DNA of 64,000 nt from Octopus sinensis (lineage: Eukaryota), in NCBI RefSeq assembly GCF_006345805.1, contig NC_042998.1:91574001-91638000 (forward strand), in the 5' to 3' direction. Below are positions 1 to 44,989 of the stretch, piece after piece. The position numbers were made by a program, and so were the translations under genes. The stretch's first letter is position 1; each line of letters starts with the position of its first letter. The notes beneath the pieces are model-generated. The model searched no databases. It was not told the origin of the DNA and saw nothing but the letters and a program-made list of their open reading frames with translations.

Positions 1-2470
1 TAGTCACTGAAATTGAACAGACAGAGGTTGATATTAAACCTGAATCTAAAGAGGAAGTGGCAATCCAATTTGAGATTTCTGATAAATCTGTTGAGAAAAC
101 AGAGATTACCAGAATTGATATTGATAAACCAGAAGAAGTAGTCACTGAAATTGAAAAGACAGAGGTTGATATTAAACCTGAAACTAAAGAGGAAGTGGCT
201 ATCCAATCTGAGATTTCTGATAAACCTTTTGAGACAACAGAGATTACCAGAATTGATATTGGGAAACCAGAAGAAGTAGTCACTGAAATTGAAAAGACAG
301 AGGTTGATATTAAACCTGAAACTAAAGAGGAAGTGGCTATACAACTTGTGATTTCTGAGAAACCTGTTGAGAAAACAGAGATTACCAGTATCAATATTGG
401 TAAACCAGAAGAAGTAGTCACTAAAATTGAAAAGACAGAGGTTGATATTAAACCTGAAACTAAAGAGGAAGTGGCTGTCCAACTTGAGATTTCTGATAAA
501 CCTGTTGAGAAAACAGAGATTACCAGAATTGATATTGTTAAACCAGAAGAAGTTGTCACTGAATTTGAAAAGACAGAGGTTGATATTAAACATGAAACTA
601 AAGAGGAAGTGGCTATCCAATTTGAGATTTCTGATAAACCTGTTGAGATGACAGAGATTACCAGAATTGATATTGGTAAACCAGAAGAAGTTGTCACTGA
701 AATTGAAAAGACAGAGGTTGATATTAAACCTGAAACTAAAGAAGAAGTGGCAATCCAATTCGAGATTTCTGATAAATCTGTTGATAAAACAGAGATTACC
801 AGAATTGATATTGTTAAACCAGAAGAAGTTGTCACTGAAATTGAAAAGACAGAGGTTGATATTAAACCTGAAACTAAAGAGGAAGTGGCAATACAACTTC
901 AGATTTCCGATAAACCTGTTGAGACTACGGAGATTACCAGAATTGATATTGGTAAACCAGAAGAAGTACTTACTGAAATTGAAAAGACAGATATTGATAT
1001 TAAACCAGAATCTAAAGAGGAAGTGGCTATCGAACTTGAGATTTCTGATAAACCTTTTGAGAAAATAGAGATTACCAGAATTGATATTGGTAAACCAGAA
1101 GAAGTAGTCACTGAAATTGAAAAGACCGTCGTTGATATTAAACCTGAAACTAAAGAGGAAGTGGCTATCCAATTTGAGATTTCTGATAAACCTGTTGAGA
1201 CAACAGAGATTACCAGAATTGATATTGGTAAACCAGAAGAAGTTGTCACTGAAATTGAAAAGACAGAGGTTGATATTAAACCTGAAACAAAAGAGGAAGT
1301 GGCAATCCAATTTGAGATTTCTGATAAATCTGTTGAGAAAACAGAGATTACCAGAATTAATATTGGTAAACCAGAAGAAGTTGTCACTGAAATTGAAAAG
1401 ACAGAGGTTGATATTAAACCTGAAACTAAAGAGGAAGTTGCTATCGAAATTGTGATTTGTGATAAATCTGTTGAGAAAACAGAGATTACCAGAATTGATA
1501 TTGGTAAACTAGAAGAAGTAGTGACTGAAATTGAAAAGACAGAGTTTGATATTAAACCTGAAACTAAAGAGGAAGTGGCTATCCAACTTGAGATTTCTGA
1601 TAAACCCGTTGAGAATACAGAGATTACTAGAATCGATATTGTTAAACCAGAAGAAGTAGTCACTGAAATCGAAAAGACAGAGGTCGATATTAAACCTGAA
1701 ACTAAAGAGGAAGTGGCTATCCAACTTGAGATTTCTGATAAACCTGTTGAGAAAACAGAGATTACCAGAATTGTTATTGGTGAATCAGAAGAAGTAGTCC
1801 CTGAATTTGAGAAGAAAGATCTTGATATTAAACCTGAAGCAAAACAGGAAGTGGCTATCCAACATGAGATTTCTGATAAACCTGTTGAGACAACAGAGAT
1901 TACCAGAATTGATATTGGGAAACCAGAAGAAGTAGTCACTGAAATTGAAAAGACAAAGGTTGATATTAAACCTGAAACTAAAGAGGAAGTGTCTATCCAA
2001 TTTGAGATTTCTGATAAATCTGTTGAGAAAACAGAGATTACCAGAATTGATATTGGTAAACCAGAAGAAGTAGTCACTGAAATTGAAAAGACAGAGGTGG
2101 ATATTAAACCTGAAACTAAAGAGGAAGTGCTATCCAACTTGAGATTTCTGATAAACCTGTTGAGAAAACAGAGATTACCAGAAACGATATTGGTAAACCA
2201 GATGAAGTAGTCACTGAAATTGAAAAGACAGAGGTTGATATTAAACCTGAAACTAAAGAGGAAGTGGCTATCCAATTTGAGATTTCTGATAAACCTGTTG
2301 AGACAACAGAGATTACCAGAATTGATATTGGTAAACCAGAAGAAGTTGTCACTGAAATTGAAAAGACAGAGTTTGATATTAAACCTGAAACTAAAGAGGA
2401 AGTGGCTATGCAACTTGAGATTTCTGATAAGCCTGTTGAGGGACTTGATGTTAAATCTATTGATATTGGT
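1..2470 (+). repeat. Coding tandem array, 138-nt (46-aa) unit KPEEVVTEIEKTEVDIKPETKEEVAIQFEISDKPVEKTEITRIDIG
   Basis: Motif aaaccagaagaag recurs at 126, 264 and onward (period 138); about 18 copies. Confidence 0.97.
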
Positions 2471-3775: not shown

Positions 3776-4079
3776 ATGTTTAAAATGATATTATGTAATA
3801 TAAGATTGGATACTCTTCTCCATCATGCTCTCTCTTCATTCTCTGTCTGTCTCTTCTTCCTTTCTCCCTTTGTCCTTTGTATCTTTCCCTCCTCTCAATG
3901 CCTTCATTTTTTATCATACATTTTTCTCTTTCTGGTCTCTTCATGTCTCTCCCTCTTTCCTTACATTTATTATTTCTACTATGTTTTCTCTAAGTTTTCT
4001 TTTGTTTTGAAACTGATTTTTGCAACCTTTCTTTTTTGTGTCCTTTCCCTTTCTGCCATTTTCATTTTTTCTTTCATTA

Positions 4080-4245
4080 ACTCCTGCTGCTCCTCCTCCT
4101 CCCCCTCCTCCCTCTCCCTCCTCCCCCTCCTCCCTCTCCTCCCTCTCCCTCCTCCCCCTCCTCCTATCCCCTCTCCCTCTCCCTCTCCCTCCTCCTCTCC
4201 CCCCTCTTCCCCCATCCCCCTCCTTCTTCATCATCTCCCTTTCTC
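4080..4245. repeat. C/T-rich (CTC/CCCT) low-complexity tract
   Basis: Almost pure pyrimidine run; it produces the spurious poly-P/S and poly-G/E ORFs in the track. Confidence 0.9.
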
Positions 4246-7200
4246 ACTTTTTTCTGTAGAAATCTCTGTACTTTATTACGGTGTAAATATTCTAAATCTG
4301 CTTTTTTCCTCTTAGAATATATTTGAAGATATTTAGTATTGAATACATTCATCAATACTGGTAACTTCTAACTAATTCTTTATCATATATGATTGTTTAT
4401 AGGTCCAATATTTGTGCATCATACGTTATTTCATGTTAGTGTGTAAGGTTTCACTTGCATGAAAACATGGCTACAATAATTGCAATTTTTGCACAAATGT
4501 AAAATTATACACTTGCAGTATGGAAGCTTGTATTAATTCACACACAATACAGTTTTTGTCTTTTTAATAAGGGGATTATAAGAAGAAATATTTCACCAGT
4601 TATTTCACTTTTTTATATATAGTTTATGTAATGTTGTAATTCATAATTAAATGTGTGTGTGTGTGTATGAGTATACAACAATATGTGTAAAAGGATAACT
4701 CAAAATGTGAAGTAAAAATCCTATTATTTCTTATTATCAAAGAGTCCTTATAAACAGATGTTTTCTTAGTATTCCTTTTACTCAGAATAGACTCAGAAAA
4801 ATATTTTTTCTCAATCTAGTTTTAAAATTAGTGCTTGTATTTTGAAGGCAAATTTTTTATCCTTTTTTACATAAAGGAATAGATCTCTTGATATGATATA
4901 AAATCAGAGAAACTTATAAAAATAAACATAGAAAGAAATAATGACAAATAATATATGAGACATTACTATTGTAAAATCTCATTTCTGAAATTTAAACATG
5001 TACTGTTATATTTCTTGTGAAAGGTTTCATATAGTGTTTATCTTAGAAAATTTTGTTTTATTTTTGTGATGTTTTGCACACCTTACTTGTCAGTCTTCTT
5101 GAGATCTCTCCATCCCTTTTGTCTAGAACATAGAATTCAGTTTTAATTTACACTTGTCTTACAAATTGAGCAAAACTACTTTCCTTGTTGTCCAAGAATT
5201 TTCTGTTCTCAGTTACTTGTTAGTATTTTTGCCATTATGAATATCACAATATTTTGAACTGTAGCTGGTTCCACTTTCCTAAGAGATTATAGGATGAAAA
5301 CCAGGTTGTCTTCTAATAAAAAATTCCAATGACATTCAAATGGGAAAAATATCAGTATTATTTTAGTAATTACAACTAACTACAAAGAATTATACTAAGA
5401 AGTCCAGGACAGAGACTAAGTAAATATCTTCACACAGAATTCTTTACTGAACTTGCTGATGATCTTAACATTGATTTCAAGAACTTTGTACATGGTTTTA
5501 TTTTTCTCTCACAGATTATTGATCTACTGCTACACATCTGTCCATGCAAGTAATTAAAGCATGGGAGGTTGTTATAGCTGGGTCCCAAGTTGACAAATCC
5601 ATAGTGAAATATTTGCTTTCTTTTAAAAGCTCCTCATACTATTTTCTGATCATTTCTACCTTCAAATCAAAATTACAACTTTTCTAAGCTAATCATATCT
5701 TGCATTAACTGCAAAATATTGTAAATCCACTTGTTCATACCCTCAGTTATGCAATACATCCCTTTCATTTTTGTATCACTTTTTAATGGCCTCGCCAGTC
5801 ATTATACCTAACAGCTTCCTGGACTACCTTATCTAGCAACTTTTTGTAATGATACTTTTAAGGCTACATTTCTACTCACAAAACTGGAAAATTGCAGGAG
5901 TGTTGTTCTCAACATACTTCTAATACCAGTCAAGTTCATATAATAATATTGTCTTGCAATTAAGAATAGTGAACAGCTCTTATTCTCATTGAGAATTATT
6001 CTACTCTCAGATTCTTTGCTGGTTAAATAAAATTGACATCTTATCTCTGACCTAGATTTCTGATACCTCCTTTTGCTACCCATTTTTTCTTAGTCCTTTC
6101 AATACATAAGCTTCACTATTAAAACTTTGAAATCACAAGCTATTATGATAACATATCTGTCATCAATTTTGGGGTTACTTATTATATTGATGATTCTAGT
6201 TATTTGTTACAATTTTCATTTGCCATTGAAAGTTTTGAGTTATTGAAGAGATAAAAGGGGAAGTAAAATAATGGAATAGAATATTTTTTTAAAATGTTAA
6301 TTGTATTTTGCTCTGCAATATAGATTTAACAGCTTCATTAGTGAAACTGTAAATTTGTTAAAAATGTCAGGCTAATGTTTTGTTGTATCTGCACATGTAG
6401 TTGCTATATAGAACAATTGATTTATGTATAATTGTTTATCTTGGTCAACAGAATTGTCATATGTATTAATTAATGTATACTGTATTGTGACTTGCTTGTT
6501 TTTTCAATTAAAATGAAAATTATTTTCTTATATTTATTATTGATTGTAATTGTTGAAAACTGTCTTTTACAACCTTCAGTGCAAACTTTGTTTATATTTA
6601 AAAACAAACCTACCTAGTTCTTTTGATGTAATTATCTTAATACACATGATGTTTGAATATTGAATGCTTACAAATAATTTTCAAACATTGAAAAGAGCTT
6701 CGTTGTTTATTATATGATGGGCTTGACAGTAATTGTATTTCTATTCCTGATTTCCAAATTGGTGTCACTTCTTTAGATTCTTAGTTTTTGCCAAGATTGC
6801 ATTCTTTGATTTCAATCTCTAAGTAAATCAGAAACTCCATTCATATTTAGATGAAAAAAAAAAAGAGAAAAAAACATATGAATTTGGTATTTGATTTAGT
6901 TAATGAAATTTAAAACTTTTTTCCAGAATTTTGTTTATAGAAGCTATATTTAATTAATCTTAACAAATGAATTTATATAGTTTCTCAGTGTGTAATATTT
7001 AGAAGAACAAATAAATCTTTAATGAATACATTGTATATATATATATATATATATACAAGAAATAATTAAGATTCAGTTGAATTGGGTACTTAAGTTGAGG
7101 TACCAATTTAGTCTGGTATTATCTGCATAGCTCAAAGTAAGGTGAATAAAATTAAATAAGTAACAAGATGTCAAGTATTAATGCAATACAACCATTTCAG

Positions 7201-7404
7201 GTGGGTCCATTTATACCGAACAACACAAGCATTAAATCAATTTAAATGCAGTGCCATCTTCAGTTGCAAAAAATATGGACTTTCAACAGACAAGATATAT
7301 TATTTTATCAGAGTTAGAGGATGAAGGAATTTCATGTTGCCACTGTTGCAGCAGAAAAAATCTGCAATAGAGGCAACCATGGAATTCTTTCATCCTCTAG
7401 CTCT

Positions 7405-7993
<589 letters not shown>

Positions 7994-7999
7994 CATATA

Positions 8000-8035
<36 letters not shown>

Positions 8036-8179
8036 TATATAATCCAAGGAAGAGTCAATTTCTTTTAAAGGGATGGAAAACATCCAACTTTCTCTGGTTC
8101 TTCAGTTAAATACCACAATATAGTAGAGAAGTAGAGAGAAAAATCAGAACTTAAAATGGTATTATTTAAAAAAACGTAA

Positions 8180-8671
8180 ATATTAAAAGAAATAGAAAAA
8201 TACAATTGGCATATTATAAATTTATTAACATTATAGTATAATATAATTATACTATGAAAACATATAATGTAATATGATTTAGTATAACAAATTAATAAAA
8301 CAAATATATATCTTACAATCTGTTTCGTTTCATATCCGCTAGTGAATTTATGTATATGGATCTCATCAGGTAATATCTGTCTAAAAAATGTACAAAAATT
8401 TCATGAAATTTCATAAAATAGTCTATTTTATGACTTAACAGTCCTTGCATGAAATTTTTGTCTATTTTTTAGACAAACATTATCCTGGCGAGGTCCATAT
8501 ACATAAATGTGATTTTTTTATAAATTCACAAGTGGATATGAATCGAAACAAATTGTAGGTTATATATTAATTTTATTTAATTTTTATATTATATCAATTT
8601 ATAGTATAATTATATTATATTAATTTGTTAATAAATTTATAATACATCAATTGTATTTCTCTATTTCCTTT

Positions 8672-8676
<5 letters not shown>
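8180..8676. mobile_element. About 500-bp imperfect foldback (MITE-like palindrome)
   Basis: Arm 8180-8405 is the reverse complement of 8448-8676 (e.g. tacaatctgtttcg...gtgaattta vs taaattcac...cgaaacaaattgta). The loop contains a nested palindrome at 8411-8433. Confidence 0.85.
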
Positions 8677-8703
<27 letters not shown>

Positions 8704-8984
8704 ACAGCCAACTTATGTTTTGGTGAATTCTTCATGTCACATTTGATTACAGAATATTTAATGGCTACTTTTTACTGTTACTATTACATTTTGTGTCATT
8801 ATAAATATTTTTTTTACTAAACAATTATTTACCCTTCTTTTAGAAATTTATAATCTGTTTTTTTTTTGTGTTGCAATTTACATTTTTAAGATATTTAAAA
8901 TGAATTTACTGTTATAGTTTGTCTTGTATTGTTGAATAATTTGTTAGATGTAATATATATATGTTTCCTTTTAATAATGTGTCT

Positions 8985-9270
8985 CTTTCACTTAACTCTT
9001 TTTGTTTATTTCAGGTAAGTTGCCCGTTTTTGAATTGAATTTCTGTTACCAGATACCAAATTCAATCTCTATAATCCACATGTACCATTTACAATACTAC
9101 AGAACCATAGCTTGTATATCAGTTATGGTTAACATTTATGGTAATGTGTATCCTTATGTGAGAAGAACATAAAAGGTTACAGTTATTCAACAGAGGAAGT
9201 AGGTATTAAATTTTAAAATTATGAATGATTTACCAAAGTTATGATTTAATTTTCTACACCCCAGGTATGT
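8985..9270 (+). promoter_or_regulatory. Putative recursive splice site (YnCAG|GTAAGT at 9014/9015) plus downstream donor CAG|GTATGT at 9264/9265
   Basis: Polypyrimidine tract ctctttttgtttatttCAG directly abuts a perfect GTAAGT donor; a homologous arrangement occurs at 22115-22406. Confidence 0.6.
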
Positions 9271-10661
9271 AATCCTATAATTTCTATTTTCAAGAATTAA
9301 AATGTTTTATGATAGGCAGATAGGAAATTTAATTTTACCTCCAAATTGTTTTATCCTGCTAATCAATCTTAATTTCAGATATTCAGTTATCTTTTTTGTT
9401 ACTTATTTATTAAATATATTGATCAGTTTTCATACATTTTGTCAGGAGAAATTAAAGAAGAATATTTCTGAAAGTTGGAGAACATATTTCTGATTTTTAA
9501 ACAAGGCTATAAAAATTAATTTAAAATCAATACTTAATTTAAAACATAGTTTTATATTTTTAACCCTTGGACATTAACTTTTATATCAATCATACTGAGA
9601 TATATTTAAAGATGTTTTTAAAAAAATAATGCAAATAAGAAACCTTTGGTAATTTTACCAATTAGATAACTGAGCATTGTTTTTACACTTTACTTGTTCA
9701 AGTGAGAAAAAACCCATCATTCCTGAATGCTTTTATTGCATTCGTGCATGAATTCATGGGAAAAATATATGCATTCTGTATAAAAGAATAATAGGTGCTT
9801 ATGTGCAGACCCATGTATACATATACAATACACACACTCACACAATTACACACACGCACACTGATGTATGGAAAATCATGTTGAATAGAAGATAAAAAAA
9901 AAGTATGTGGCAATAAGATTGATTTTGGAGAACAACAAAACTACAACCAATAATTTTCTTTTGATGGAAATTTATTCAAAGATTGTTTCCCATCTCTTTG
10001 GAAAATATTTGTATTTGATGAATTGGTATAAGTATCTCTTGCATAGACATGCAGAACAATAAAATTCTTGCCTTATGTTCATCCATCATTTTCTACATGA
10101 ATTCTATTCAACCATTGTAAGAATTTATTAAATAACAACAGTTTATATCATATCAGACCAACTTTACATACAGCTTAGAATCTGAAGTTAAGAAAAAAAA
10201 GACAAATACATAGTATTAAGTCAGCAGAAATCTCTGAGTAAGTAAAAATTAAAAAATGTTGGAAACAGCTATTATTAAAATCCTATACGGACGCATACAA
10301 GAAATATTTAAATGTGCTTCCAGATGGTCATTCAAAGATCAATGAAAGTTTCATCCATACAACATTCAGATAAATTTCTAAACATATGCCCTATATTAAA
10401 AAGGATCCTCATTTACATCAGAGTATTGCACAAGTTCAACCTGTAATAAGTCTAAATACTATTAACCATCATAAATTACTCCTCTTTCAAGGTAATATTC
10501 TCTATATTACATGAAATTAATATTTGTTCTTTATTTCTCTCATTTAGATGTAAACAAAATTTCATATTTCTTTAAATCAAGGGAAGATAAATAACCATCA
10601 GATAAAACTCTGATTATTATATGAGAATGTATTTTTTAAAAACTTATTTGATTTACATTAG

Positions 10662-13600
10662 GTGATATGCCAGTTGTTAGAGAAATAACAAAGACAGACG
10701 AAGAAGAAGAAAAGATTAAAGAAATACCAGAAATGGCACTGCAGGAAGTTGCAGAAATAAAAGAAAGTTTACCATCTTTAGAAACACCTGAAAGCATTAA
10801 AATGGATATAAATGTACAAATAACTTCAGATGTAGTAAAAGCTAAAACAGATGAAGTAAAAGATATGAAGGAAAAAGATGTTGAAAAAGAAATAGCCACA
10901 TCCGATGAGGTATATATTTCTCACAGAGAACAAATAACAACGGCACCAACATCATTTGAGACAATTATTGATAAGAAAATAGACAAGAAGGATAAAATTA
11001 AGGAAAAGACGGAGGTTGATATTAAGCCAGAAACTAAAGAAGAAGTATCTATCCAACTTGATATTAGTGATAAACCTGTCGAGAAAACAGAAGTCATATA
11101 CATTGATATTGGTAAACCTGAGAAACCAGTCAGTGAAATTGAAGTACAAGTTGCACCTCAAGTACCTGAGGTTATTTCTATAGAAAAAGATCAGGTATCT
11201 ACCGATAAGAGAGAAATTATCATTAGCAAAGAAGAAACTGAAGTTATTCCAGAAATGTCTACATTTGACATTGTGCCAGACAGTACAATTCAGATCGAAG
11301 CTAAAGAAATGGAAATTAAAGAGAAGAAACCACAAATTACTGATATTACAGCAATTTCTACTGCTGTAATGAAGGAAAAACAACCAGAAGAAGAAGTGAA
11401 ACCTGTTTCTGAAATTCAACTTACAGATGTATCTGAGACGGTAATACCAGAGAAAGTTGAAACTGCTAAAGTTACCTCAATTATAACTACAAGCACTGAG
11501 GAACGGAAGACCAAGATTTCTCCAGAGAAAATTAGTGATATTCCTGTGGAAATGGTATTATCAATTGACTCTAAGAAAGTCACATCTGAAGATCAAGTAC
11601 CAATGGTTATAAAGACTGAACAGACATATACAACAGGTGAAGAAGAGGTGGAGAAAGAAATTACAGTGCAGACATTGGAAATGCCTTTACAAGACACAGT
11701 AACTGTAAAACCAGTGGAAGAAACTGGTATTCAGATTTCTGTGAGTTCTACTAAAGCATCTGCTATTGAAGAAGCTCCTGTTGAAGATGTAACTGATAAG
11801 GTTGTTGAAATCAGCAAGGAAAGTGAAATCATTCCTGTGAGTAAAGAAGTGAAAGGTATCTCTGAAATGACCATTATAAGTGCTCCATCAGTAAGTGTTG
11901 TGAGTACAGCTGAAGAAGAGCTTTCTGAAGAAGAATTCTTTGATATTCCATCAACTGAAGAAAAAAAGTGGAACCTAAAGAAGTTTCTGATGAGGAAAAA
12001 GACACATCAGTTAGTGTACGTGATGAGATTCGCAGCAGAAGATGTGTTAGTTGATGCTATTGAACATATCACTGATATAGAGAAGAACATGTAGAGATAC
12101 CTAAGTCTGCAGCTGTTGTTAGCACTGATCTTCAAGAGATTACAATTAAAGAGACAATTCCTACTGAAATTGTACATGAAGAAGTAGTTTCAAAGGAACC
12201 TGTTGAAAAGACAGAATTTGTTATTAAACCAGAAACTATAGAGGAAATGTCTATTCAACTTGACATTGGTGCTAAGCCTGTTGAGAAAACAGAAGTTGTA
12301 TCCATTGATATTGGTAAACCAGAAAAAGTTGTCACTGAAATTGAAAAGACAGAGGTTGAAATTAAACCAGAAACTAAAGAGGAAGTCTCAATCCAACTTG
12401 ACATTGGTGATAAACCTGTTGAGAAAACAGAAGTTATCTCCATTGATATTGGTAAACCCGAGAAACCAGTCACTGAAATAGAAATGCAAGTGGCACCTCA
12501 AGTACCTGAGATAATTTCTATAGAAAAGGAACCAATCACTATTGATCAAAGGAAAATTATCATTAGCAAAGAAGAAACTGAAGTTATTCCAGAAATTTCT
12601 ACGTTTGATATTGTGCCAGACAGTACAATTCAGATCGAAGCTAAAGAAATGGAAATTAAAGAGAAGAAACCACAAATTACTGATATTACAGCAATTTCTA
12701 CTGCTGTAATGAAGGAAAAACAACCAGAAGAAGAAGTGGAACATGTTTCTGAAATTCAACCAACAGATGTATCTGAGACGGTAATACCAGAGAAAGTTGA
12801 AACTGCTAAAGTTACCTCAATTATAACTACAAGCACTGAGGAACGGAAGACCAAGATTTCTCCAGAGAAAATTAGTGATATTCCTGTGGAAATGGTAGTA
12901 TCAATTGACTCTAAGAAAGTTACATCTGAAGATCAGGTACCAATGGTTATAAAGACTGAACAGACATATACAACAGGGGAAGAGGAGGTGGAGAAAGAAA
13001 TTACAGTGCAGACATTGGAAATGCCATTACAAGACTCAGTAACTGTAAAACCAGTGGAAGAAACTGGTATTCAGATTTCCGTGAGTTCTACTAAAGCATC
13101 TGCTATTGAAGAAGCTCCTGTTGAAGATGTAACTGATAAGGTTATTGAAATCAGCAAGGAAAGTGAAATCATTCCTGTGAGTAAAGAAGTGAAAGATATC
13201 TCTGAAATGACCATTATAAGTGCTCCATCAGTAAGTGTTGTGAGTACAGCTGAAGAAGAGCTTTCTGAAGAAGAATTCTTTGATATTCCATCAACTGAAG
13301 AAAAGAAAGTGGAACCTAAAGAGGTTTCTGATGAAGAAAAAGACACATCAGTTAGTGTACGTGATGAGATTCGCACAGCAGAAGATGTGTTAGTTGATGC
13401 TATTGAACATATCACTGATATAGAGAAAGAACATGTAGAGATACCTAAGTCTGCAGCTGTTGTTAGCACTGATCTTCAAGAGATTACAATTAAAGAGACA
13501 ATTCCTACTGAAATTGTACATGAAGAAGTAGTTTCAAAGGAACCTGTTGAAAAGACAGAATTTGTTATTAAACCAAAACTATAGAGGAAATGTCTATTCA

Positions 13601-16600
13601 ACTTGAAATTGGTGCTAAACCTGTTGAGAAAACAGAAGTTGTATCCATTGATATTGGTAAACCAGAAAAAGTTGTCACTAAATTGAAAAGACAGAGGTTG
13701 ATATTAAACCAGAAACTAAAGAAGAAGTATCTATCCAACTTGATATTAGCGATAAACCTGTTGAGAAAACAGAAGTCATCTCCATTGATATTGGTAAACC
13801 TGAGAAACCAGTCAGTGAAATTGAAGTACAAGTTGCACCTCAAGTACCTGAGGTTATTTCTATAGAAAAAGATCAGGTATCTACCGATAAGAGAGAAATT
13901 ATCATTAGCAAAGAAGAAACTGAAGTTATTCCAGAAATGTCTACATTTGACATTGTGCCAGACAGTACAATTCAGATCGAAGCTAAAGAAATGGAAATTA
14001 AAGAGAAGAAACCACAAATTACTGATATTACAGCAATTTCTACTGCTGTAATGAAGGAAAAACAACCAGAAGAAGAAGTGGAACATGTTTCTGAAATTCA
14101 ACCAACAGATGTATCTGAGACGGTAATACCAGAGAAAGTTGAAACTGCTAAAGTTACCTCAATTATAACTAAGCACTGAGGAACGGAAGACCAAGATTTC
14201 TCCAGAGAAAATTAGTGATATTCCTGTGGAAATGGTAGTATCAATTGACTCTAAGAAAGTCACATCTGAAGATCAGGTACCAATGGTTATAAAGACTGAA
14301 CAGACATATACAACAGGGGAAGAGGAGGTGGAGAAAGAAATTACAGTGCAGACATTGGAAATGCCTTTACAAGACACAGTAACTGTAAAACCAGTGGAAG
14401 AAACTGGTATTCAGATTTCTGTGAGTTCTACTAAAGCATCTGCTATTGAAGAAGCTCCTGTTGAAGATGTAACTGATAAGGTTATTGAAATCAGCAAGGA
14501 AAGTGAAATCATTCCTGTGAGTAAAGAAGTGAAAGATATCTCTGAAATGACCATTATAAGTGCTCCATCAGTAAGTGTTGTGAGTACAGCTGAAAAGAGC
14601 TTTCTGAAGAAGAATTCTTTGATATTCCATCAACTGAAGAAAAGAAAGTGGAACCTAAAGAGGTTTCTGATGAAGAAAAAGACACATCAGTTAGTGTACG
14701 TGATGAGATTCGCACAGCAGAAGATGTGTTAGTTGATGCTATTGAACATATCACTGATATAGAGAAAGAACATGTAGAGATACCTAAGTCTGCAGCTGTT
14801 GTTAGCACTGATCTTCAAGTGATTACAATTAAAGAGACAATTCCTACTGAAATTGTACATGAAGAAGTAGTTTCAAAGGAACCTGTTGAAAAGACAGAAT
14901 TTGTTATTAAACCAGAAACTATAGAGGAAATGTCTATTCAACTTGAAATTGGTGCTAAACCTGTTGAGAAAACAGAAGTTGTATCCATTGATATTGGTAA
15001 ACCAGAAAAAGTTGTCACTGAAATTGAAAAGACAGAGGTTGATATTAAACCAGAAACTAAAGAAGAAGTATCTATCCAACTTGATATTAGCGATAAACCT
15101 GTTGAGAAAACAGAAGTCATCTCCATTGATATTGGTAAACCTGAGAAACCAGTCAGTGAAATTGAAGTACAAGTTGCACCTCAAGTACCTGAGGTTATTT
15201 CTATAGAAAAAGATCAGGTATCTACCGATAAGAGAGAAATTATCATTAGCAAAGAGAAACTGAAGTTATTCCAGAAATGTCTACATTTGACATTGTGCCA
15301 GACAGTACAATTCAGATCGAAGCTAAAGAAATGGAAATTAAAGAGAAGAAACCACAAATTACTGATATTACAGCAATTTCTACTGCTGTAATGAAGGAAA
15401 AACAACCAGAAGAAGAAGTGGAACATGTTTCTGAAATTCAACCAACAGATGTATCTGAGACGGTAATACCAGAGAAAGTTGAAACTGCTAAAGTTACCTC
15501 AATTATAACTACAAGCACTGAGGAACGGAAGACCAAGATTTCTCCAGAGAAAATTAGTGATATTCCTGTGGAAATGGTAGTATCAATTGACTCTAAGAAA
15601 GTCACATCTGAAGATCAGGTACCAATGGTTATAAAGACTGAACAGACATATACAACAGGGGAAGAGGAGGTGGAGAAAGAAATTACAGTGCAGACATTGG
15701 AAATGCCTTTACAAGACACAGTAACTGTAAAACCAGTGGAAGAAACTGGTATTCAGATTTCTGTGAGTTCTACTAAAGCATCTGCTATTGAAGAAGCTCC
15801 TGTTGAAGATGTAACTGATAAGGTTATTGAAATCAGCAAGGAAAGTGAAATCATTCCTGTGAGTAAAGAAGTGAAAGATATCTCTGAAATGACCATTATA
15901 AGTGCTCCATCAGTAAGTGTTGTGAGTACAGCTGAAGAAGAGCTTTCTGAAGAAGATTCTTTGATATTCCATCAACTGAAGAAAAGAAAGTGGAACCTAA
16001 AGAGGTTTCTGATGAAGAAAAAGACACATAGTTAGTGTACGTGATGAGATTCGCACAGCAGAAGATGTGTTAGTTGATGTTATTGAACATATCACTGATA
16101 TAGAGAAAGAACATGTAGAGATACCTAAGTCTGCAGCTGTTGTTAGCACTGATCTTCAAGAGATTACAATTAAAGAGACAATTCCTACTGAAATTGTACA
16201 TGAAGAAGTAGTTTCAAAGGAACCTATTGAAAAGACAGAATTTGTTATTAAACCAGAAACTATAGAGGAAATGTCTATTCAACTTGAAATTGGTGCTAAA
16301 CCTGTTGAGAAAACAGAAGTTGTATCCATTGATATTGGTAAACCCGAAAAAGTTGTCACAGAAATTGAAAAGACAGAGGTTGATATTAAACCAGAAACGA
16401 TAGAGGAAATGTCTATCCAACTTGATATTAGCGATAAACCTGTTGAGAAAACAGAAGTTGTATCCATTGATATTGGGAAGCCTGAAAAAGTTGTCACTGA
16501 AATGGAAAAGACAGAGGTTGATATTAAACCAGAAACTAAAGAGGAAATGTCTATTCAACTTGACATTGGTGCTAAACCTGTTGAGAAAACAGAAGTTGTA

Positions 16601-17309
16601 TCCATTGATATTGGTAAACCAGAAAAAGTTGTCACAGAAATTGAAAAGACAGAGGTTGATATTAAACCAGAAACGATAGAGGAAATGTCTATCCAACTTG
16701 ATATTAGCGATAAACCTGTTGAGAAAACAGAAGTTGTATCCATTGATATTGGTAAACCAGAAAAAGTTGTCACAGAAATTGAAAAAACAGAGGTTGATAT
16801 TAAACCAGAAACGATAGAGGAAATGTCTATCCAACTTGATATTAGCGATAAACCTGTTGAGAAAACAGAAGTTGTATCCATTGATATTGGTAAACCAGAA
16901 AAAGTTGTCACAGAAATGGAAAAGACTGAGGTTGATATTAAACCAGAAACTAAAGAGGAAATGTCTATCCAACTTGACATTGGTGCTAAACCTGTTGAGA
17001 AAACAGAAATTACAACCATTGAATTTGGTAAGCCTGAGACATCTAAAATTGATATTAGTGATGTAGTTTGTGCTCCATCTGAAGTTATTGATATATCCAC
17101 TGATACAAAACCTGCCACTGAAGAAATTGTTTCATCAGACTTGTACAGTTCAGAGCTTCAAAGTCCGAATATATATGATGAAGCTTCTGCTGTGAAATCC
17201 ATTGTGCCAAGCTTAATTCATGAAGGAGATGTATTGATCGAATCAAAAAGTAGCCTTTCTGGTCCTGAAGATCTTCAGTTATTGAAAGAAGAAGTTGTGG
17301 AAGATATAG
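10662..17309 (+). CDS. Giant repeat exon B, phase 1-1 cassette (about 2220 aa after restoring apparent deletions)
   Basis: Acceptor ttacattAG|GTGATATG, donor GATATAG|GTATTT. ORF fragments are separated by ten 1-2-nt deletions (total 12 nt) relative to sister repeat copies. Confidence 0.8.
11000..16365 (+). repeat. Higher-order coding repeat, 4 x 1344 nt (448 aa), each containing two 138-nt-type monomers
   Basis: Landmark spacings of 1340, 1340 and 1342 become exactly 1344 when the local deletions are added back. Confidence 0.93.
16260..17030 (+). repeat. 138-nt monomer array, about 5.5 copies, near the end of exon B
   Basis: Repeated KPEKVVTE(I/M)EKTEVDIKPET(I/K)EEMSIQLDI(S/G)xKPVEKTEVVSIDIG in ORF 16067-17371. 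Confidence 0.93.
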
Positions 17310-17620
17310 GTATTTGGCGGAGCATTATCCGGGATTTAATTTATGCTACTGCACTTGCTGCTACTGCTTGACTTTACACAAGCATCAATTTCTGTAGCTT
17401 ACCAATGCCTCGGTAGCATGCTGTTAAATGTGTATTTAGATGTTTTAATGTACTTAACCAGTGTATTTGTTTTTATGTCTCTTTCAGCTCAATAATTTGT
17501 CAATAGTTTTGTTGGGTCTTTGTTATCTCTCATATCTAAAGAGTATAACTGTCTGTATAAAAAGAAAATGCTTTCTTTGTATTTTCATATAGATGCATGT
17601 TGCTTTGCTTAGGTATTTAT
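17310..17620 (+). promoter_or_regulatory. Conserved intronic element downstream of exon B; copy 2 of 3
   Basis: cttgctgctactgct, TTTTATGTCTCTTTCAG (ends 17487), TGCATG at 17594; second block TGCATG at 17856. Confidence 0.6.
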
Positions 17621-18197
17621 AATAATTTTACATAGCAAGTAATCAATCTCTACATTTTTGCTTTGCTAAATTTATATTGAATATAAAACTAAATTCATCA
17701 TATCTGCTTTTTAGCCTTAGGATTATTTAAAGATATATAGTATTAAAATATCCTCGAATATCTAAAATATTTAACAAATGCCATACGATATTTAGAATTA
17801 GTTAGGTTCTGGTTTATTAGTTTATCATAGATTAGAATGTTTCAGTTCAAACATTTGCATGGAAAAGAAGCTCTTATACTTGCATTTTGTGCATAACTAT
17901 AAATTTAGATATCCTCAATTTTTATATCTGTAGTAATTCTACATTTTCATGTGTCTCAGTTTTTCCACATTATTACTGTTATTTTGTATATAATTTAAAA
18001 GAAATAAAATAAATATTTTATGCCAATTACTGCATAATTTTATTTTAACGTTATCTTAACAGTTTTATTCACCAAGGAGAAGTTTTGATATACAACTTAG
18101 CATAACTTAGTTAAAAATTTTGTGATTGAAAACTTTCTTTGAATTATATTTACATTTATAAAATGGTGGTGAGCTGGTAGAATCATTAGCACTGTGG

Positions 18198-19039
18198 ACT
18201 TTCTTGTATAATGAAATTCTGTAAAAGTATTTTTAAAAATTAGATTTAATGAATTAATAATATTATTGTGTCAATAATAGGTTTTATTTAATTATATTAA
18301 GGGTGGTAAGTGTCTGAAATAGTAGAGTCAGGGCTTAAATGCCTTGCAGCAGTTACATTCAAGTCCAAATCTAAGTGGCATTTTTCCCAGCTCTTTGCAT
18401 TCTGTGTTCATATTCCACTGAGGTTGACATTACCTTCCATCTTTTTGCTGTCAATAAAATAAGCACCAATTTTCTACTCGGGTTGATGTAATAAACTCAC
18501 CCCGCTAAAATTCTGGCCTTGTGCCAAAATTTGAAACCATTATGTTATATTTATATATATATATAACACTGAAACATAAAAATATTACATTTGATATTAT
18601 GAAAAAATGGTTGCTTTAAATAAATAATAGATTATTTACACTAGTTATTTCTCGAAGGAAAAGTATTTAAAATGAACATTGAATGAGATTTTTGATGAAA
18701 CTAAATCCATGTAATGTATCTTTTTTTATATTGTTAATCATTTTGGAAACTCAGATTAATATTTAATTGCAAGTTATTTTATCTGGTTAATGTTAGATTT
18801 ATAGAAGAAATTTTAAAATTTAATAAAACTTTTGGGAATTAATATATTTCTTACTTAGATCATACTTTCTTGTATAATGAAATTTTGGTTAAAATATTTT
18901 TAGAAATTGGATTTATTGAACTAATACTATTATTGGATCAATAATAGGTTTTATTTAATTATATTGAGAGTGGTAAGTGTCTGAAATAGTGGAGTCAGGG
19001 TTTAAATGATTTGCAGCATTTACATTTAAGTCCAAATCT
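18198..19039 (+). repeat. Local direct duplication of about 175 bp (18198-18372 and 18864-19039) overlapping degenerate SINE-like sequence
   Basis: actttcttgtataatgaaatt...gtggtaagtgtctgaaatag...aagtccaaatct occurs twice, about 666 bp apart. Confidence 0.8.
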
Positions 19040-22000
19040 TATCAAGTTTACTATACTGTTCATCCACTTGAAGTTGATAAAATAATCTTCTGTCAAGTGC
19101 TGAGGTTGATATAACTGATGATATCCTCTCCTAAATTTCATGGCCTCTGTAACAAATCTTTATTTAAGTATTTAGATTTTTTGAATTTTAGATTTTATTA
19201 CCATTTCATCAGATCACAATTTTAATTTAAATTACAATTTAAAAAGACATTATTTAAATTTAATTTTACTATATAATTGAAAATTAATGTCTGCTTTAAA
19301 AATCAGCATTTGAAATTACGTTTGTATCTATTTTGTTGCTTATTCTCAGCTGAAGAAGCTTTCCATGGTTTACACATTGTTATCTATCTTGTGTGAAACA
19401 GATATTCAAAACATTTTATGTAAACTGTCCATATTTGCTAAATGGTATTATTTTGTTTTTTGTTTTGTACTGTATTTGTTGTTTGGCAGCCATAACTCTC
19501 TGTCCCACTTAAGTGATTTATTGTAGCATTGTCTTTTAGTGTGCTTCACTATGAGCAGCTTTGCAATAATTGTACTTTGGCAGATTTCTAAAATTAAACT
19601 AGTATGTAGGTGCCTTTCTTTTTTTTAAATATTTTGATATAGGAATTGCCCATTAATGTTATCATAGAGATAAACTAAATTATTCATCAGTATCAAAATG
19701 GAACTGACGTTTTAATACAGAATCTAATTTTGCAACTGTATATACTTATTTTTTTTTTAAATGTATAATTTTTATATCACAATTGTACTTGTATTGTTCT
19801 TTGATTTACAAACTGAGGGACATCACTAATAACATTACTTAGAAATGGTAGTTAGAATAAACAAAAGTTCTTCAAATTCTTACATTGCAATCAAATGGAA
19901 GTTTTGTATCAAAAGATGAAATAATACTCAGAAAGCAACATTTCTTTACATCCTAATTTTATTTACTATTTTACCATATACTTCAGTATAGTTTTCAATC
20001 ATTCTCAGTCCTCAGTAATTATGTTATAGAATTTAGTGTTGCAGTCTTATGCTATTATATTTTTTATTTTTTAATTGTGATTACAAATATTTATTCCATT
20101 CCTTATTTACTTTTGCAGTTGTATAGATGAAGATATTAAGTTTTGATCAATTATTACCATCTTTTAGCAAAGTGATAAATAATCACTGAATTTCTGAAAA
20201 TTAAAATTCACTTTAGAAATATTTGTCTATGAACTTCTTTTTATGAGAAAATGTTAGGCTATCTACTTATGGCTAAAATATATTGTATGAATTTTAAAAG
20301 CAAATAAATAATTTTAATTTTGGAAGGGAGGAAAATCGAAAGCAATATAAGAGAGCAGATTAAGTTTTTGAAATCTGGATTTTATTTTGTTCTAAAATTT
20401 ATTTTAGATATTATCATACAAGAAAATTGTTAATTACTATATCATCAGAAGTAGGAATATTTGTACAAGTTTAGTTCAAGAACATAAGAATTGTTTTTCT
20501 TGTAAGCATCTAGTTTGGGAATTATAGTTGTTCATTGCTGTATGTTTGAAAAATATTCTTTTGTTTTTCTAAACATATCTTGTCAAAAGCCACATGCTTA
20601 GAAATGATTATTCATATTGTAGCATATTCATATTGTAGAAAACTTGGTCCAGGTTATCTTGCAATGTTTCAGTTTTCAATATTTCTATATTTTTCTTGAA
20701 AGTGGTTGCAAATAGTATTTATTTATGTAAGTTTTGGAGCAAATTTTATTTTAAATATAAGAATAACAAAACTTGTTTCAATTTAAATGTCTTCTCTTCA
20801 GATATGCATCTCCCATTCTCTTTTATATATGCTTTGTATCTGTGCCCACACTTAGTTTAAAAGTAGAAATTAGAAATTTTTTGCTATCATTCAAATATTT
20901 CAGTATACAATATATTGATATGAAATCTTTTTCTTATTCAAATTTAAGGTATTTTTTATAAACCTCTAAATTATTTTAATTCAATTTCTTTTGAGTAAGG
21001 AAGACAGTGTCCACAATCTTTTTACTACCAATTTGGCAATAAAGGAGAGGGACAGTTGGGTCAAGTTAAGCTGGTTAATATGGAATTTGGACATATGACA
21101 ATCACTTGTTGCTGATTAATTTGGCTTCAAGATAGCAAAGGCGTTCAAGACATTCAATTCCACAGGTAGAGTTCTGAAAAAGAATGTTATGGAAGTATAT
21201 TTAGAGGATTGGATACAGTCATATGGACAGGAAAGTTAGATGGTAGTAGGTTTACAATCAGCAATTCCAAAAGGTAGAATTTTTGGTTACACTAGAAGAG
21301 AGAGAGAGAGAGAGCATGGTTCAGAAGTGATCTAGTCATAGCAATGTCTCGTTTAGTAAAAGTCTATATATCAACTATCAGGTGGATTTTTTATTGATAT
21401 AGTTGAAAATGTGTGTGTGTCATTGAACATTTTACAGATGTCAACAATTGTTTTATAGTTAAAATTATGTTATTAGAGTCTTTATTTTATTCTTAATAAA
21501 ATGTCATTACAAATATTTTAAAATTTCTGAATGGTCATATTTTCATATGGTAGTGATTTTCTCTCAATCATAGTGTATATCCTCTTTTTCATTTCTAGTT
21601 GGTGAAATTTCATTTATAAATTTTTAGAAAAGCAGCTAGTCACACCTTTCTGATGTTTTCTATGTCCCTACAAAAAATAAAGTAAAATAGTTAAAAAAGA
21701 CTGAAATCAGTTCCAGATATTTAAAGTATACAATTACGTTATAATAAAATTCAATACACAAAAACTATATGTTTCTTGTCTCACCTACTGGAAAACTAAA
21801 TTATATACATGACAATCAGCTAATACTTTAGTGTATTATTAGTGACAAATATGATTGTAGAATATTTATTTATCAATCTATTAATTTATTTACAAAATAT
21901 TGCCCTTCATTGTGGTAAAAATCTCTTTATTAAAGTTTGACTTTATTTATCCTGTCGAAATTTAAAGCTTATGTTGTTTTCCCTCAAATTTTATATTTTA

Positions 22001-22089
22001 TGGTACCTACATTGTATGTATATTTGCTGTAATTTATGCTCTTGTATGTTGGTTTATTTATCCTATGTGGTTCAAATATATATCTGACA

Positions 22090-22406
22090 CTGCTCTTTCA
22101 TATTTCTCTTTACAGGTAAGAAAACACATTTTATGATGGATTTCATGTTATTGTATAACGAGACAAGTCTACATAATCAAAATATGTATTTTACAACACT
22201 TTAATATAATAGTTCTTACAATATATAAGTATGGGTTATATATATATATATATATATATGCTCATGCACATATATGTGTGTATGTATGGTGGACATAAAA
22301 TGAAATATGCCAGTTTACCAATACAGGAAGTATATATTTAAATTCTTAAAAATTCATCTGAATATTCACCAACATCATAATTTAGTTATCTTCAACTCAG
22401 GTATGT
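22090..22406 (+). promoter_or_regulatory. Putative recursive splice site (YnCAG|GTAAGA at 22115/22116) plus downstream donor CAG|GTATGT at 22400/22401
   Basis: ctctttcatatttctctttaCAG|GTAAG with no other AG for more than 100 nt upstream. The 27-nt second site matches the one at 9264 at 22 of 27 positions. Confidence 0.6.
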
Positions 22407-25400
22407 TTCCATATAGTTTCTACTTTCTATTTAAAATTTGTGGAAATCAGGTATGATGTAAACAACCATTTTATTTAGTTTTTAATATTTGTTTTATTTT
22501 ATGCACCATGTACACTCACTCAAACAACATTGTTTTCTTTTCACTCACTACCTTTGTTGGTTATGCAATACATTTTTATTTTCAAAGTCTATATTTTTGA
22601 TATTTTAAACCAGTAATATTCTAATCATAATTGTTTAAATAGTAAGTAAATTATTTAGACCAATATTTAATTTATCACATTTACTGGTCTATATTTTAAA
22701 TTTGGGCCTTACAGTTTTGTCTATGATAAAATACCTGTAAATTATGGGTGGAAATGCTATTTTGAAATGTTCAGGAACCCAAATTTAACTTTCATTTTAA
22801 TTATAATACACTCATAATCTTTTCTTTCTTTGTCTAAAACCAGTGTAACTGACCAAACATTGATGACTATATCTGATTATGAAAAGTCCGACAATTTGGA
22901 TCTTATTAAAGTCTCCTAGATAACAAACACTATGAACTGCTTCTGAAGCTTATCTAGCCTCTGTAAAAATTTTTTTCATGAGAGTCTTACTGTTAACAAC
23001 TTCTTAGAATCTCCTACATACTAAATCTGCTCAGTTAGTCTTCCTATAATTCCACAACATCTCTTGTGCATTTATAGTTTACATTTTGTGCAAACTACAG
23101 AGTCCCTGTCTACTCCTTTTCTGCCTATTGAGCATGGCTACCTCTCTGATAGCAAGAGATCCAGCCTTCTTACCTGTGATACCTCGCAATTCTAGATTCT
23201 GCTTCTATGGTTGGGATTTCTTCTCTAATTCTTTAACAACATCACTAAAAACTAGCTTATTGATATGCTGAAGTTATCTTAGACAGCTGCTCTTAAACTC
23301 CTTCCTTGTGGTTTGGAGAAGTATAACAAACAACAGCAAGCTGAAACTGAACTCTGATGACTCATGGATACTTACATGCACAATAAATTTCTTATCAAAC
23401 TCATTTCTAACTCACAATTTGGTCATGGCATTTCTGTTCATGGCTTGCACAAGCCATGTATTTACACCTAATTTTCTTAGTGATCACTAGACTACATAGT
23501 GTGATATCCTTTCAAAGACTTTCTTCTAAATGCTAGGTGTAGTAGCTTACTCTCACATAAGAAATTTTGCTGTAAATGTCTTAAGAAGAGAGTACCTGTG
23601 GCATTCCATCCCAGTACAAACCAAAACTGCTTCTCATCTAAACTAACTCTCTTCCTAATCATTTACTTTCATGAATAGGTGTTTTGCCTATTTCTTTCAT
23701 AGCCTTGTACATCAATTTGGCATAACTATAATTATTTCTTTTTACATTTCCTTTGTCCGTGTAGTAGTTAACAATGAAACTGCTATGCCTGTCATTGAGA
23801 ATGATAGCACATTATATAATCTGACTGACTATGCAAGGGACTAGTGTACATCTTAATTTGTCACATATTTTCAGCATTTCAGTAATACTTCCCTTATGAC
23901 CAAACGAACTTCAATATCTGCTCTTTCTATTTGTGCATTTGATATTGATTTCATCTGTAGTTATATTAGTTTCATTAAACCATTTAAATATACATGGTAT
24001 TCCATACTAAAATTGAAAGATGTATAAATTAATGTAAAAACTAACTTACAATATATGTATGGTAATCATTTATATGATAATGTCCAAATATTAGTACCTA
24101 CATATAGTTTTTATATGAATGACATCCAATCACACCATACACACACACATCCCCATACATACATACATACATACATACATACATACATACATACATACAT
24201 ACTATCAAATTATAATCCTGCATTCCAAGAATCCTTGTAAATTACAGTTAGGAACATTCTCAGTTGCACATTACATCATCATCATAATTTTACATCTTTT
24301 TTCTATGATGGTATGGGTTAGGTGAGTTGTCCTCATCACAGCTAGATTCCATTATTTGAGTTACTGCTTTCTCAGATGGTTCAGGAGATCATGTCTTGCT
24401 TGTAATTTAATCTTACATAGCTTTAAAGGCTGGATACCTTTCCTAACACCAGCCTCTTTAGTAAGAGTACTGAATATATTTTATTGAGGCACCAGTAGTT
24501 GAGAAGTTTTTCTGCTCTCTTTGCTATTGTCTCTATTCATTTGCCAATAACTTTACACTCAAGTGAGAATGCCTTGTCCTTTGCAAGACAAAAGAATCCT
24601 CTCTTGTTCTGTTGCCCAAGACAGACATAAACAAGAAACTAACCAGAAGATAGTATATGAGTATGTGTTTGAATACAATGAGTTTAAACAGAGTGGATAG
24701 TGTGGTAAGGATGGAAGTAATTGAAGAGAAACAGTGATAAGTGACAACATGTTAGGACAGACAAACTGATGGAAGGAATAATTGCAGTGAAGGAGAGTTA
24801 TATAAAATAGAAATATTCTGTGTCAATAAAAGTGCAATTGTAGAGGGGCAATGTGTATGTGTGTATATGAGAGAGAAAGGCTGAAGTATAACAATAAGAT
24901 GGGTGATGGCAAGAGACGGTGATTGATATTTAAGAAAGGGAGTAAATGATGGTAAAAGAGAGTGTTTAGTGTAAGTGTCATTGAAAGATGATGTGGGGAA
25001 GAGAAAATGTTTGTTAATCATGACTTGTTACACATGAAGACATACAGGTAGGGTGACAAACTGCGATTGGTGGGGGCACTGAATATAGACAGTTCCAGGA
25101 CCAGCCACCATCACAGGCATGACATAGTACAATGATTAAGAAAGAGAGTTGAGTGATAGTTGGGAGAGTAATAGGCAGTAGATGGAAAGATAATAAATTT
25201 AATTGATGCTGTCATTAACATGCCAATTAAAGTAATTCTACATATTAAGTTATCAACAGCATGTGTACAAACACACTAAGTTATGTAAAAATCATTTGAA
25301 GTCTCACTAATTCAATATTTTAGTGAAAACAATGAAAATGCAAACTTTTATAGCAATAATCATTTACACAAGCATACTGTACTAGTATTATCTACTGTTA

Positions 25401-25611
25401 GAGGGAGTTTATTGATTACCTGTATAAACAACAAATGTGTTATGGAGTTGATGTCACTGATTTCATTTCTCTCATTTACTACACCAAATATAAATAAATA
25501 ATAATTTCAATTTTTTTTATGTTAAGTCAAAGCAGGATGAATAAACATGGAGACAAAACAATAATTACAATGTAAAAATGTTTTTCTTAAAACTTATTTG
25601 ATTTATATTAG

Positions 25612-44949: not shown

Positions 44950-44982
<33 letters not shown>

Positions 44983-44989
44983 ATATATA

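Follow-up and report, generated by a model that had tools for sequence, protein, structure and literature searches.

Recursive splicing, the stepwise removal of an intron, has been experimentally documented in insects and vertebrates. The ratchet points of Drosophila genes such as Ubx, kuz and Bx juxtapose an acceptor and a donor behind a T-rich tract, reading YAG/GTAAGT at the junction (slashes here mark splice junctions, and those within brackets alternative letters), and are ultraconserved within poorly conserved flanks (bioRxiv 10.1101/006163; PMC6110457; PMC8605326). TT occupies positions -5/-6 in 99.5% of fly ratchet points, and the recursive introns span 11-133 kb (at least 11.3 kb), most of them exceeding 40 kb, and their segments are no shorter than 2.6 kb (bioRxiv 10.1101/006163). 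Behind the tandem acceptor and donor, a second donor bounds a short, out-of-frame cryptic exon that contains stops, the recursive-splicing exon (RS-exon), which is typically ~50 nt long in flies; the two donors compete, that of the ratchet point being generally at least as strong (PMC8605326). In vertebrates, definition of the RS-exon comes first, and whether the exon is then skipped or included depends on which of two competing donors prevails, the recreated one or its own; an included RS-exon introduces premature stops (Sibley et al., 2015; Blazquez et al., 2018, PMC6224609; Hoppe et al., 2023, PMC10156609). The classic vertebrate sites lie in neuronal-gene introns of more than 150 kb. Lariat work in human cells nevertheless reports recursive sites across intron sizes, including shorter introns, so that a very long intron is typical rather than strictly defining. 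The present analysis concerns a 64,000-nt stretch of Octopus sinensis DNA (assembly GCF_006345805.1, contig NC_042998.1, positions 91,574,001 to 91,638,000, forward strand; hereafter the window), in which the introns between the giant exons of a titin-like gene carry a candidate cassette of this kind. Full-text literature searches found no link of recursive splicing to cephalopods or other molluscs, both terms meeting only in one unrelated paper, and no relevant titin paper, in line with the supposition of a first-pass annotation of this DNA that the process was undescribed for a mollusc titin-like gene.

Ratchet-like sites between giant exons

The host appears from its sequence to be a titin-like or sallimus-like giant muscle protein gene of a cephalopod, with tandem immunoglobulin (Ig) I-set domains together with long PEVK-like disordered segments. 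Giant exons A, B and C occupy 1-3467, 10662-17309 and 25612-30022 of the window, and the features described below lie on the + strand unless stated otherwise. Each of them ends at a donor ATAG/GTATTT (3467/3468, 17309/17310 and 30022/30023), and exons B and C begin at an acceptor TTAG/GTGATATG (10661/10662 and 25611/25612), with phase 1 on both sides. The boundaries at 3467/3468 and 17309/17310 agree with those that the first-pass annotation had deduced.

Both introns enclosed by these exons, A-B and B-C, contain an acceptor that runs directly into a donor, ttcag/GTAAGT at 9014/9015 and tacag/GTAAGA at 22115/22116, and in both a second site follows, cccag/GTATGT at 9264/9265 (+250 nt) and ctcag/GTATGT at 22400/22401 (+285 nt). 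These are the motifs and coordinates at which two recursive sites, each followed by the donor of a cryptic exon, had been proposed, and they were confirmed. Taken over the five copies now available, namely the two window introns and three introns of the octopod Argonauta hians, the cassette consists of a very strong acceptor fused to a consensus donor, Yn-YAG/GTAAGT, followed 183-285 nt downstream by NAG/GTATGT. We consider it reasonably probable that each intron between giant exons holds one conserved recursive-splicing cassette, in which a ratchet point and the downstream donor bound a cryptic RS-exon. At the levels of architecture and selection, the sequence supports the proposed layout, and the module is a strong candidate for stepwise intron removal in a mollusc.

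When every AGGT on both strands was scored with two matrices, one for acceptors (pyrimidine tract and YAG) and one for donors, against the base composition of the window, the four sites ranked 1-4 of 401 AG/GT positions, with scores of 15.1, 14.8, 9.6 and 7.7 (next best 7.5). The 8-mer YAGGTAAG alone is not enriched in the window (4 observed vs 3.2 expected); despite this, a chance origin was rejected on the site ranks, the homology between copies and their conservation across genera. The fifth-best dual site, ttttaacag/GTGAATAC at window position 50563, lies ~0.8 kb upstream of a further large exon, exon D, and is not homologous to the module.

The match of 22 in 27 positions noticed earlier between the second sites is real and forms part of a ~600-bp collinear homologous block (8690-9293 vs 21798-22429; nhmmer, E=8e-14) that holds both sites. 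Outside this block, only the first ~330 nt and the last ~150 nt of the two introns could be aligned with nhmmer, consistent with their description as mostly unalignable. Homology and profile searches of the window found no third module after exon C or before exon D.

In intron A-B, the acceptor half of the ratchet point (8969-9014) comprises the branch-point-like sequences TTAAC and TTCAC, a pyrimidine tract, TT at -5/-6, CAG and a 65-nt AG-free zone, and its donor half, GTAAGT (9015-9020), would recreate TAG/GTAAGT when joined to exon A. The putative cryptic RS-exon of 250 nt (9015-9264) keeps its first ~50 nt across genera. A donor-like mid block, AAGTAGGTATT, lies at 9197-9207, in which AAGTA.(G/A)TATT is invariant in 5/5 copies, and the RS-exon donor, CAG/GTATGT (GT at 9265), occupies 9262-9310 together with ~45 nt of conserved 3' sequence. 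In intron B-C, the acceptor half (22080-22115) contains CTGAC, a pyrimidine tract, TT at -5/-6, CAG and a 146-nt AG-free zone. It is followed by the donor half GTAAGA (22116-22121), by the putative cryptic RS-exon of 285 nt (22116-22400), which carries a (TA)n/(TG)n microsatellite and is the most diverged copy, and by the RS-exon donor CAG/GTATGT (GT at 22401) with its conserved 3' sequence (22398-22445). Both putative RS-exons had been described as stop-containing, and stops were found in all three frames of each; in the phase-1 reading, the first stop is met after 52 codons (A-B) and 29 codons (B-C).

Conservation in a second octopod

A word-indexed protein search with exon B returned no homologue among 8000 low-complexity candidates. 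With the end of exon A as query, an exhaustive HMMER scan matched two proteins, GAB1610542.1 of A. hians (a predicted protein of 4426 aa, 42% identity) and CAE1290795.1 of the cuttlefish Acanthosepion pharaonis. The A. hians locus (L004, 38.5 kb) contains four intact giant exons with the boundaries seen in the window, ..DIG/GTAT(T/C)T and TTAG/GT(G/A)A, and the giant-exon reading frames measured there, 7614 and 5742 nt, are intact and divisible by 3. Its predicted protein (P0121) joins two giant exons directly, ..DEDVKDIG/DLPDVSEITKK, with no exon between. The top three of the 414 AG/GT positions in this locus are ttcag/GTAAGTTA at 31362 and 6692 and tttag/GTAAGTTA at 21440, exactly one in each of the three introns between giant exons, and (G/A)AG/GTATGT lies 183-229 nt downstream of each. 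Conservation of YnCAG/GTAAG in other cephalopods had been named in the first-pass annotation as a check on its proposal, and for another octopod it was found, with the module in all three A. hians introns between giant exons. In the A. pharaonis locus (L005), Ig exons follow a lone giant exon; an equivalent intron is missing, and the cuttlefish comparison is therefore uninformative.

Global percent identity is useless as a measure of this conservation, because unrelated AT-rich segments reach ~60% (56-65%, with cheap gaps). By strict local alignment, the ratchet-point and second-donor regions score 10-43, as against a mean of 8 and a 99th percentile of 13 for control intron pairs. A profile built from the A. 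hians copies only has window 8977-9321 as its sole match in 64 kb (E=1e-18), and a five-copy profile found no extra copy in the window, the A. hians and A. pharaonis loci and contig L001 (~125 kb, either strand). Each intron between giant exons has exactly one copy of the module, in every case in sense orientation and with its parts in the same order. The introns of the genera otherwise match only at their ends, in low-complexity stretches and in a reverse-transcriptase element whose intron and orientation differ between the two. Apart from transposon sequence, no internal part of the introns other than the module can be aligned between genera whose exons share ~42% amino-acid identity. AGGTAAG and AGGTATGT are the longest invariant runs in the five-copy alignments. 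Conserved besides are ~50 nt after the ratchet point, the last ~25 nt of the RS-exon and ~45 nt after the second donor, and the middle of the module is indel-rich, with a microsatellite there in one copy. Since the matching introns of the distant octopod A. hians carry the same element, the module is under selection. The suggestion that the signals were retained by selection, made originally from the two paralogous window introns, thereby extends to five introns of two octopod genera.

A second conserved region is formed by the ~330 nt that follow every giant exon, six copies in two genera with a mean column identity of 72% (window 3468-3800, 17310-17640 and 30023-30360; A. hians locus 4142-4480, 17532-17870 and 28498-28840). 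GCATG occurs at +107..112 in 5/6 of these intron starts (+109 in intron A-B) and TGCATG at +272..294 in 5/6 (window 3757, 17594 and 30316); elsewhere in these introns, GCATG has a frequency of 0.71 per kb. Judged from these motifs, a weak donor, ATAG/GTATTT, is followed here by (U)GCAUG elements in the classical Rbfox-type arrangement. Read-through of the giant-exon donor adds a hydrophobic tail of 20 codons (GILWSIIQDF..LAATA, then a stop) in three copies (window 3468-3529 and 17310-17371; A. hians locus 4142-4200). This tail looks conserved at the nucleotide rather than the peptide level, because the stop position differs in the other three copies.

Splice-site anatomy and comparison with known systems

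The five ratchet sites, ttcag/GTAAGT and tacag/GTAAGA in the window and ttcag/GTAAGT, tttag/GTAAGT and ttcag/GTAAGT in A. hians, all combine an acceptor and a donor with zero exon length. TT stands at -5/-6 of the acceptor in 5/5 copies, a branch-point-like YTNAY motif is found at -33 to -19 in every copy, and the stretch upstream of the ratchet AG is free of AG for 44-146 nt (control gaps: median 11, 90th percentile 43). The base at -3 is C, C, C, T, C at the first site, which is compatible with an acceptor, and C, C, G, A, A at the second, which suits a donor only. As the second sites of A. hians read GAG or AAG/GTATGT, they are donors only and not second ratchet points.

The native giant-exon donors score -2.0 to -0.8, compared with 0.6 to 6.1 for five ordinary donors inferred from the Ig-exon boundaries of the same gene. 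The native giant-exon acceptors have purine-interrupted tracts and score -3.6 to -7.6, a weakness that is less secure because the ordinary acceptors of the gene span -5.3 to 4.6. Ratchet acceptors, at 5.9-10.2, lie above every ordinary acceptor of the gene. The recreated donor TAG/GTAAGT scores 6.1 (4.4 with GTAAGA) and the RS-exon donors 4.7-6.1; on this crude matrix, the recreated donor outscores that of the RS-exon in all three A. hians introns, equals it in window A-B and falls below it in window B-C. The RS-exons measure 250, 285, 187, 183 and 229 nt (1, 0, 1, 0 and 1 modulo 3) and are not frame-preserving as a set. All five contain stops in all frames, and the phase-1 reading stops 6-52 codons in. 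The host introns, at 3664-8302 nt with segments of 0.8-5.5 kb, are not of the very long class. That the module is intronic and on the sense strand is indicated by the conserved exon boundaries and phase in the window and A. hians.

Set beside the ratchet points of Drosophila, the octopod sites share the juxtaposed acceptor and donor, the T-rich tract with TT at -5/-6, the YAG/GTAAGT junction, a conserved motif in poorly conserved flanks, and a downstream donor bounding an out-of-frame exon with stops. By the crude matrix, the recreated donor of the octopod cassette scores at or above that of the RS-exon in 4 of 5 copies. The GTAAGA of the window B-C copy is also found in Ubx mI/mII (bioRxiv 10.1101/006163). 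They differ in that the host introns are of 3.7-8.3 kb rather than 11-133 kb, the RS-exons are of 183-285 nt and partly conserved rather than of ~50 nt, and a tandem array of multi-kilobase exons with weak splice sites has the module in each of its introns. The octopod case furthermore belongs to the phylum Mollusca and is known from sequence alone. The vertebrate scheme, in which the RS-exon is defined first and competing donors decide its fate, resembles what is proposed below for the octopod cassette, which unlike the classic sites in very long neuronal-gene introns is a repeated module of a muscle-type structural gene.

A proposed route of intron removal

Removal of the intron would begin with recognition of the small cassette by exon definition, after which the weak upstream giant-exon donor (ATAG/GTATTT) would be spliced to the strong ratchet acceptor. 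The junction between exon and ratchet point would recreate a strong donor, TAG/GTAAGT, which would out-compete or match the RS-exon donor and pair with the weak acceptor at the start of the following giant exon. This second step would take out the cryptic exon along with the remaining intron and leave nothing in the mRNA. We infer that splicing may pass through such an intermediate and that the cassette may act as a strength relay for multi-kilobase exons that could not be exon-defined themselves. That it "gates entry" into each giant exon, as the first-pass annotation had put it, is pure conjecture.

True recursive use is favoured because the strongest acceptor of the locus and a good donor define an exon of ideal size that is nevertheless filled with stops. 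The abutting GTAAGT would leave the acceptor usable while excluding this exon, as is required where the downstream exons need to be translated. Retention of the module in each of five introns, moreover, argues for a local role in removing each intron rather than for a gene-wide poison exon.

Several points weigh against recursive splicing here. The introns (3.7-8.3 kb) and their segments (0.8-5.5 kb) are short for the process, and the RS-exons (183-285 nt) exceed the ~50 nt typical in flies (PMC8605326). They are also more conserved internally (first ~50 nt, mid block and last ~25 nt) than typical cryptic RS-exons (PMC8605326), which hints at an added or different role. In the window B-C copy, the recreated donor TAGGTAAGA scores 4.4, below the 6.1 of the RS-exon donor. 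The weight matrices are crude and use generic metazoan frequencies rather than species-trained ones, the five copies come from two species only, and the A. hians protein derives from gene prediction and not from a transcript. Among the protein database entries searched, no transcript-derived product of the region was found.

A doubtful extension of the recursive reading is that the modules form a ratchet relay specific to arrays of multi-kilobase exons, in which ratchet-to-ratchet splicing would skip spring exons. Exons of 4.4-7.6 kb would not be exon-definable and have weak terminal sites, so that intron removal would depend on the strongly defined RS-exon. The recreated TAG/GTAAGT would then choose between the nearby weak giant-exon acceptor and the far stronger ratchet acceptor one unit downstream. 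Speculatively, ratchet-to-ratchet skipping could remove exons with a length divisible by 3, as are the A. hians exons of 7614 and 5742 nt and window exon B (6648 nt), and such loss of whole spring exons would amount to modular length tuning of an elastic muscle protein. If the relay were true, RS-exon-type recursive splicing would exist in Lophotrochozoa, which would argue for a bilaterian-ancestral mechanism.

A recursive cassette in octopods would extend the process to a third major animal lineage and to a new setting, that of short introns between giant exons with weak splice sites instead of very long introns. This raises the question of whether recursive splicing can be an answer to a splice-site pairing problem and not an intron-length problem. 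It also raises the question of how multi-kilobase exons in elastic muscle proteins are spliced and, possibly, selected. For annotation, such conserved non-coding pseudo-exons should be flagged, and gene predictors should leave them out.

Alternative explanations

The alternative that survives best, although we hold it to be unlikely, is a regulated cassette exon that is included in some mRNAs and adds a stop, leading to truncated isoforms or nonsense-mediated decay, with the GTAAG at its 5' end secondary. A strong acceptor and a strong donor around a unit of 183-285 nt are ideal for exon definition, the phase-1 stops fall 6-52 codons in, the conserved internal sequence could represent splicing enhancers or silencers, and the RS-exon donor is the stronger one in window B-C. 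The modules also resemble the poison or cassette exons coupled to nonsense-mediated decay in being conserved, stop-containing, non-coding exon-like units within introns. A poison exon, however, has no need to begin with a consensus donor, and a gene requires only one, whereas all five octopod introns retain theirs. Across these introns, the GTAAG after the AG is invariant in 5/5 copies while the encoded peptides, stop positions and lengths differ, and the unit is left out of the A. hians gene model. The distinction is in part one of degree, since under recursive splicing inclusion of the exon is an alternative outcome of the same cassette (PMC8605326).

Rather improbable is a decoy exon or intronic splicing scaffold, which would bind U2AF and U1 and affect the weak terminal sites without being spliced through a recreated donor, and which might promote intron retention, giant-exon skipping or spliceosome recruitment. 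Native donors at -2.0 to -0.8, below all five ordinary donors, and module sites that are the strongest in both loci would suit such a role, and the conserved (U)GCAUG-containing intron starts show that these introns hold other regulatory elements. A decoy-exon model is available in the literature (PMC7373989), and decoy exons promoting intron retention are likewise non-productive exon-like intronic units with functional splice sites. For a decoy, however, an acceptor and a donor suffice, and nothing requires the acceptor AG to run straight into a consensus donor; the decoy model predicts no zero-length junction of the two, and the invariant AG/GTAAG would be left unexplained. The cassette-exon and decoy explanations both overlap mechanistically with the recursive model.

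Very little probability is given to an internal promoter with a non-coding first exon, or to the site being the donor of an upstream micro-exon. Window exons B and C do have an ATG five bases after the acceptor, and a good donor, the second site, precedes each giant exon by 1.4-3.2 kb. This ATG, however, is absent from exons beta and gamma of A. hians, the sequence upstream is conserved only as a unit of branch point, pyrimidine tract and YAG, and the base at -3 is Y in 5/5 ratchet points, as fits an acceptor. Conservation extends to the exon phase and the DIG/(D/N/E)xP junction but not to the read-through stop. An acceptor for the upstream micro-exon is excluded, as no AG occurs for 44-146 nt. 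Ordinary donors of upstream micro-exons had been raised in the first-pass annotation itself as the finding that would overturn it, and they conflict with the conserved acceptor features and the AG-free zones. A neutral remnant of tandem duplication, or transposable element copies with splice-like motifs, is essentially excluded by the sequence comparison: although the window copies are paralogous by descent and hence not two independent sites, the 8-mer is unenriched and transposable elements do occupy these introns, the module is the sole internal non-transposon sequence alignable between genera, stands once per inter-giant-exon intron in sense orientation and nowhere else in ~125 kb, and has invariant runs that coincide with splice consensus and AG-free zones far above background.

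Three further candidates were rejected. Separate tandem genes, suggested by the ATG after the acceptor and a stop after the donor, conflict with the absence of the ATG in A. hians and the unconserved stop position. A non-coding RNA received neither a match in Rfam at gathering thresholds (only weak, microsatellite-driven matches were seen for the module) nor a conserved fold (consensus -1.7 kcal/mol, with an adverse covariation term). Origin from a degenerate Ig-domain exon was rejected as no significant match arose when the five modules were searched with Ig exon peptides by tblastn.

Host gene and neighbouring features

The I-set domain was matched at 63098-64000 (E=5e-63) and 41726-42022 (1.6e-20), and no Pfam family was assigned to the giant E/K/V/P-rich exons. 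The donor of exon A, GACATAG/GTATTT (3461-3473, exon end 3467, phase 1), is weak relative to consensus, and that of exon B is GATATAG/GTATTT (17303-17640 including the conserved intron start; exon end 17309, TGCATG at 17594). Exon C ends with GACATAG/GTATTT at 30022 (30016-30360 with its conserved intron start) and is without a module after it. ATAGGTAT at the giant-exon donor is invariant in six copies from two genera. The acceptors are ttatttgatttacattag/GTGATATG for exon B (10640-10670, exon start 10662), with a purine-interrupted pyrimidine tract, and ttatttgatttatattag/GTGATATG for exon C (25590-25620, exon start 25612). Exon B measures 6648 nt, a multiple of 3, and exon C 4411 nt, which is not. 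Indels of 1-2 nt split exons A, B and C of the window into 2, 7 and 3 reading-frame pieces, some of them sitting in A-runs as judged against 97%-identical paralogous repeats. They are probably assembly errors, real decay being the alternative. All five giant exons with an observed start begin with GT straight after the acceptor AG (TAG/GTGATA, TAG/GTAATT and TAG/GTGAAA; window 10662 and 25612, A. hians locus 9918, 22756 and 32162), so that each exon junction recreates a weak donor-like sequence. This may be an effect of the junction-spanning Gly codon GGT.

Between giant exon C and exon D, a different, EK-rich exon at 51.4-55.07 kb, and beyond it, Ig I-set exons were placed at 35947-36096, 38081-38279, 41726-42023 and 61568-61740. 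Because Ig exons lie within it, the region after exon C comprises several introns and not a single one. The Ig exon at 41726 resembles the one that follows the cuttlefish giant exon (22309-22653 of the A. pharaonis locus). Logan contigs L001-L003 (SRR11869390, SRR11869391 and SRR11869384) are short and hold Ig repeats only, with ~79% DNA identity to window 63.1-64.0 kb; the public read archives, as these repeats indicate, contain data from a related cephalopod.

Several of the introns also contain repetitive sequence. In the alpha-beta intron of A. hians, downstream of the module, a 703-aa frame (7127-9235, + strand) encodes RVT_1 (E=5e-32) and a PHD finger, and a related reverse-transcriptase fragment lies on the opposite strand of the window B-C intron (22910-23901, - strand). 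The two look like independent retroelement insertions. At the 5' edge of the shared intron block, a ~530-bp foldback of nested inverted repeats (81-87% complementary) occupies 8163-8693; it is missing from the B-C copy and is probably an inserted foldback or an element like a miniature inverted-repeat transposable element. A TA/TATG-type microsatellite of ~2.5 kb with 16-18% GC spans 44800-47300 and gives spurious long YI-rich reading frames on both strands, and low-complexity tracts of similar type are present at 7300-8000.

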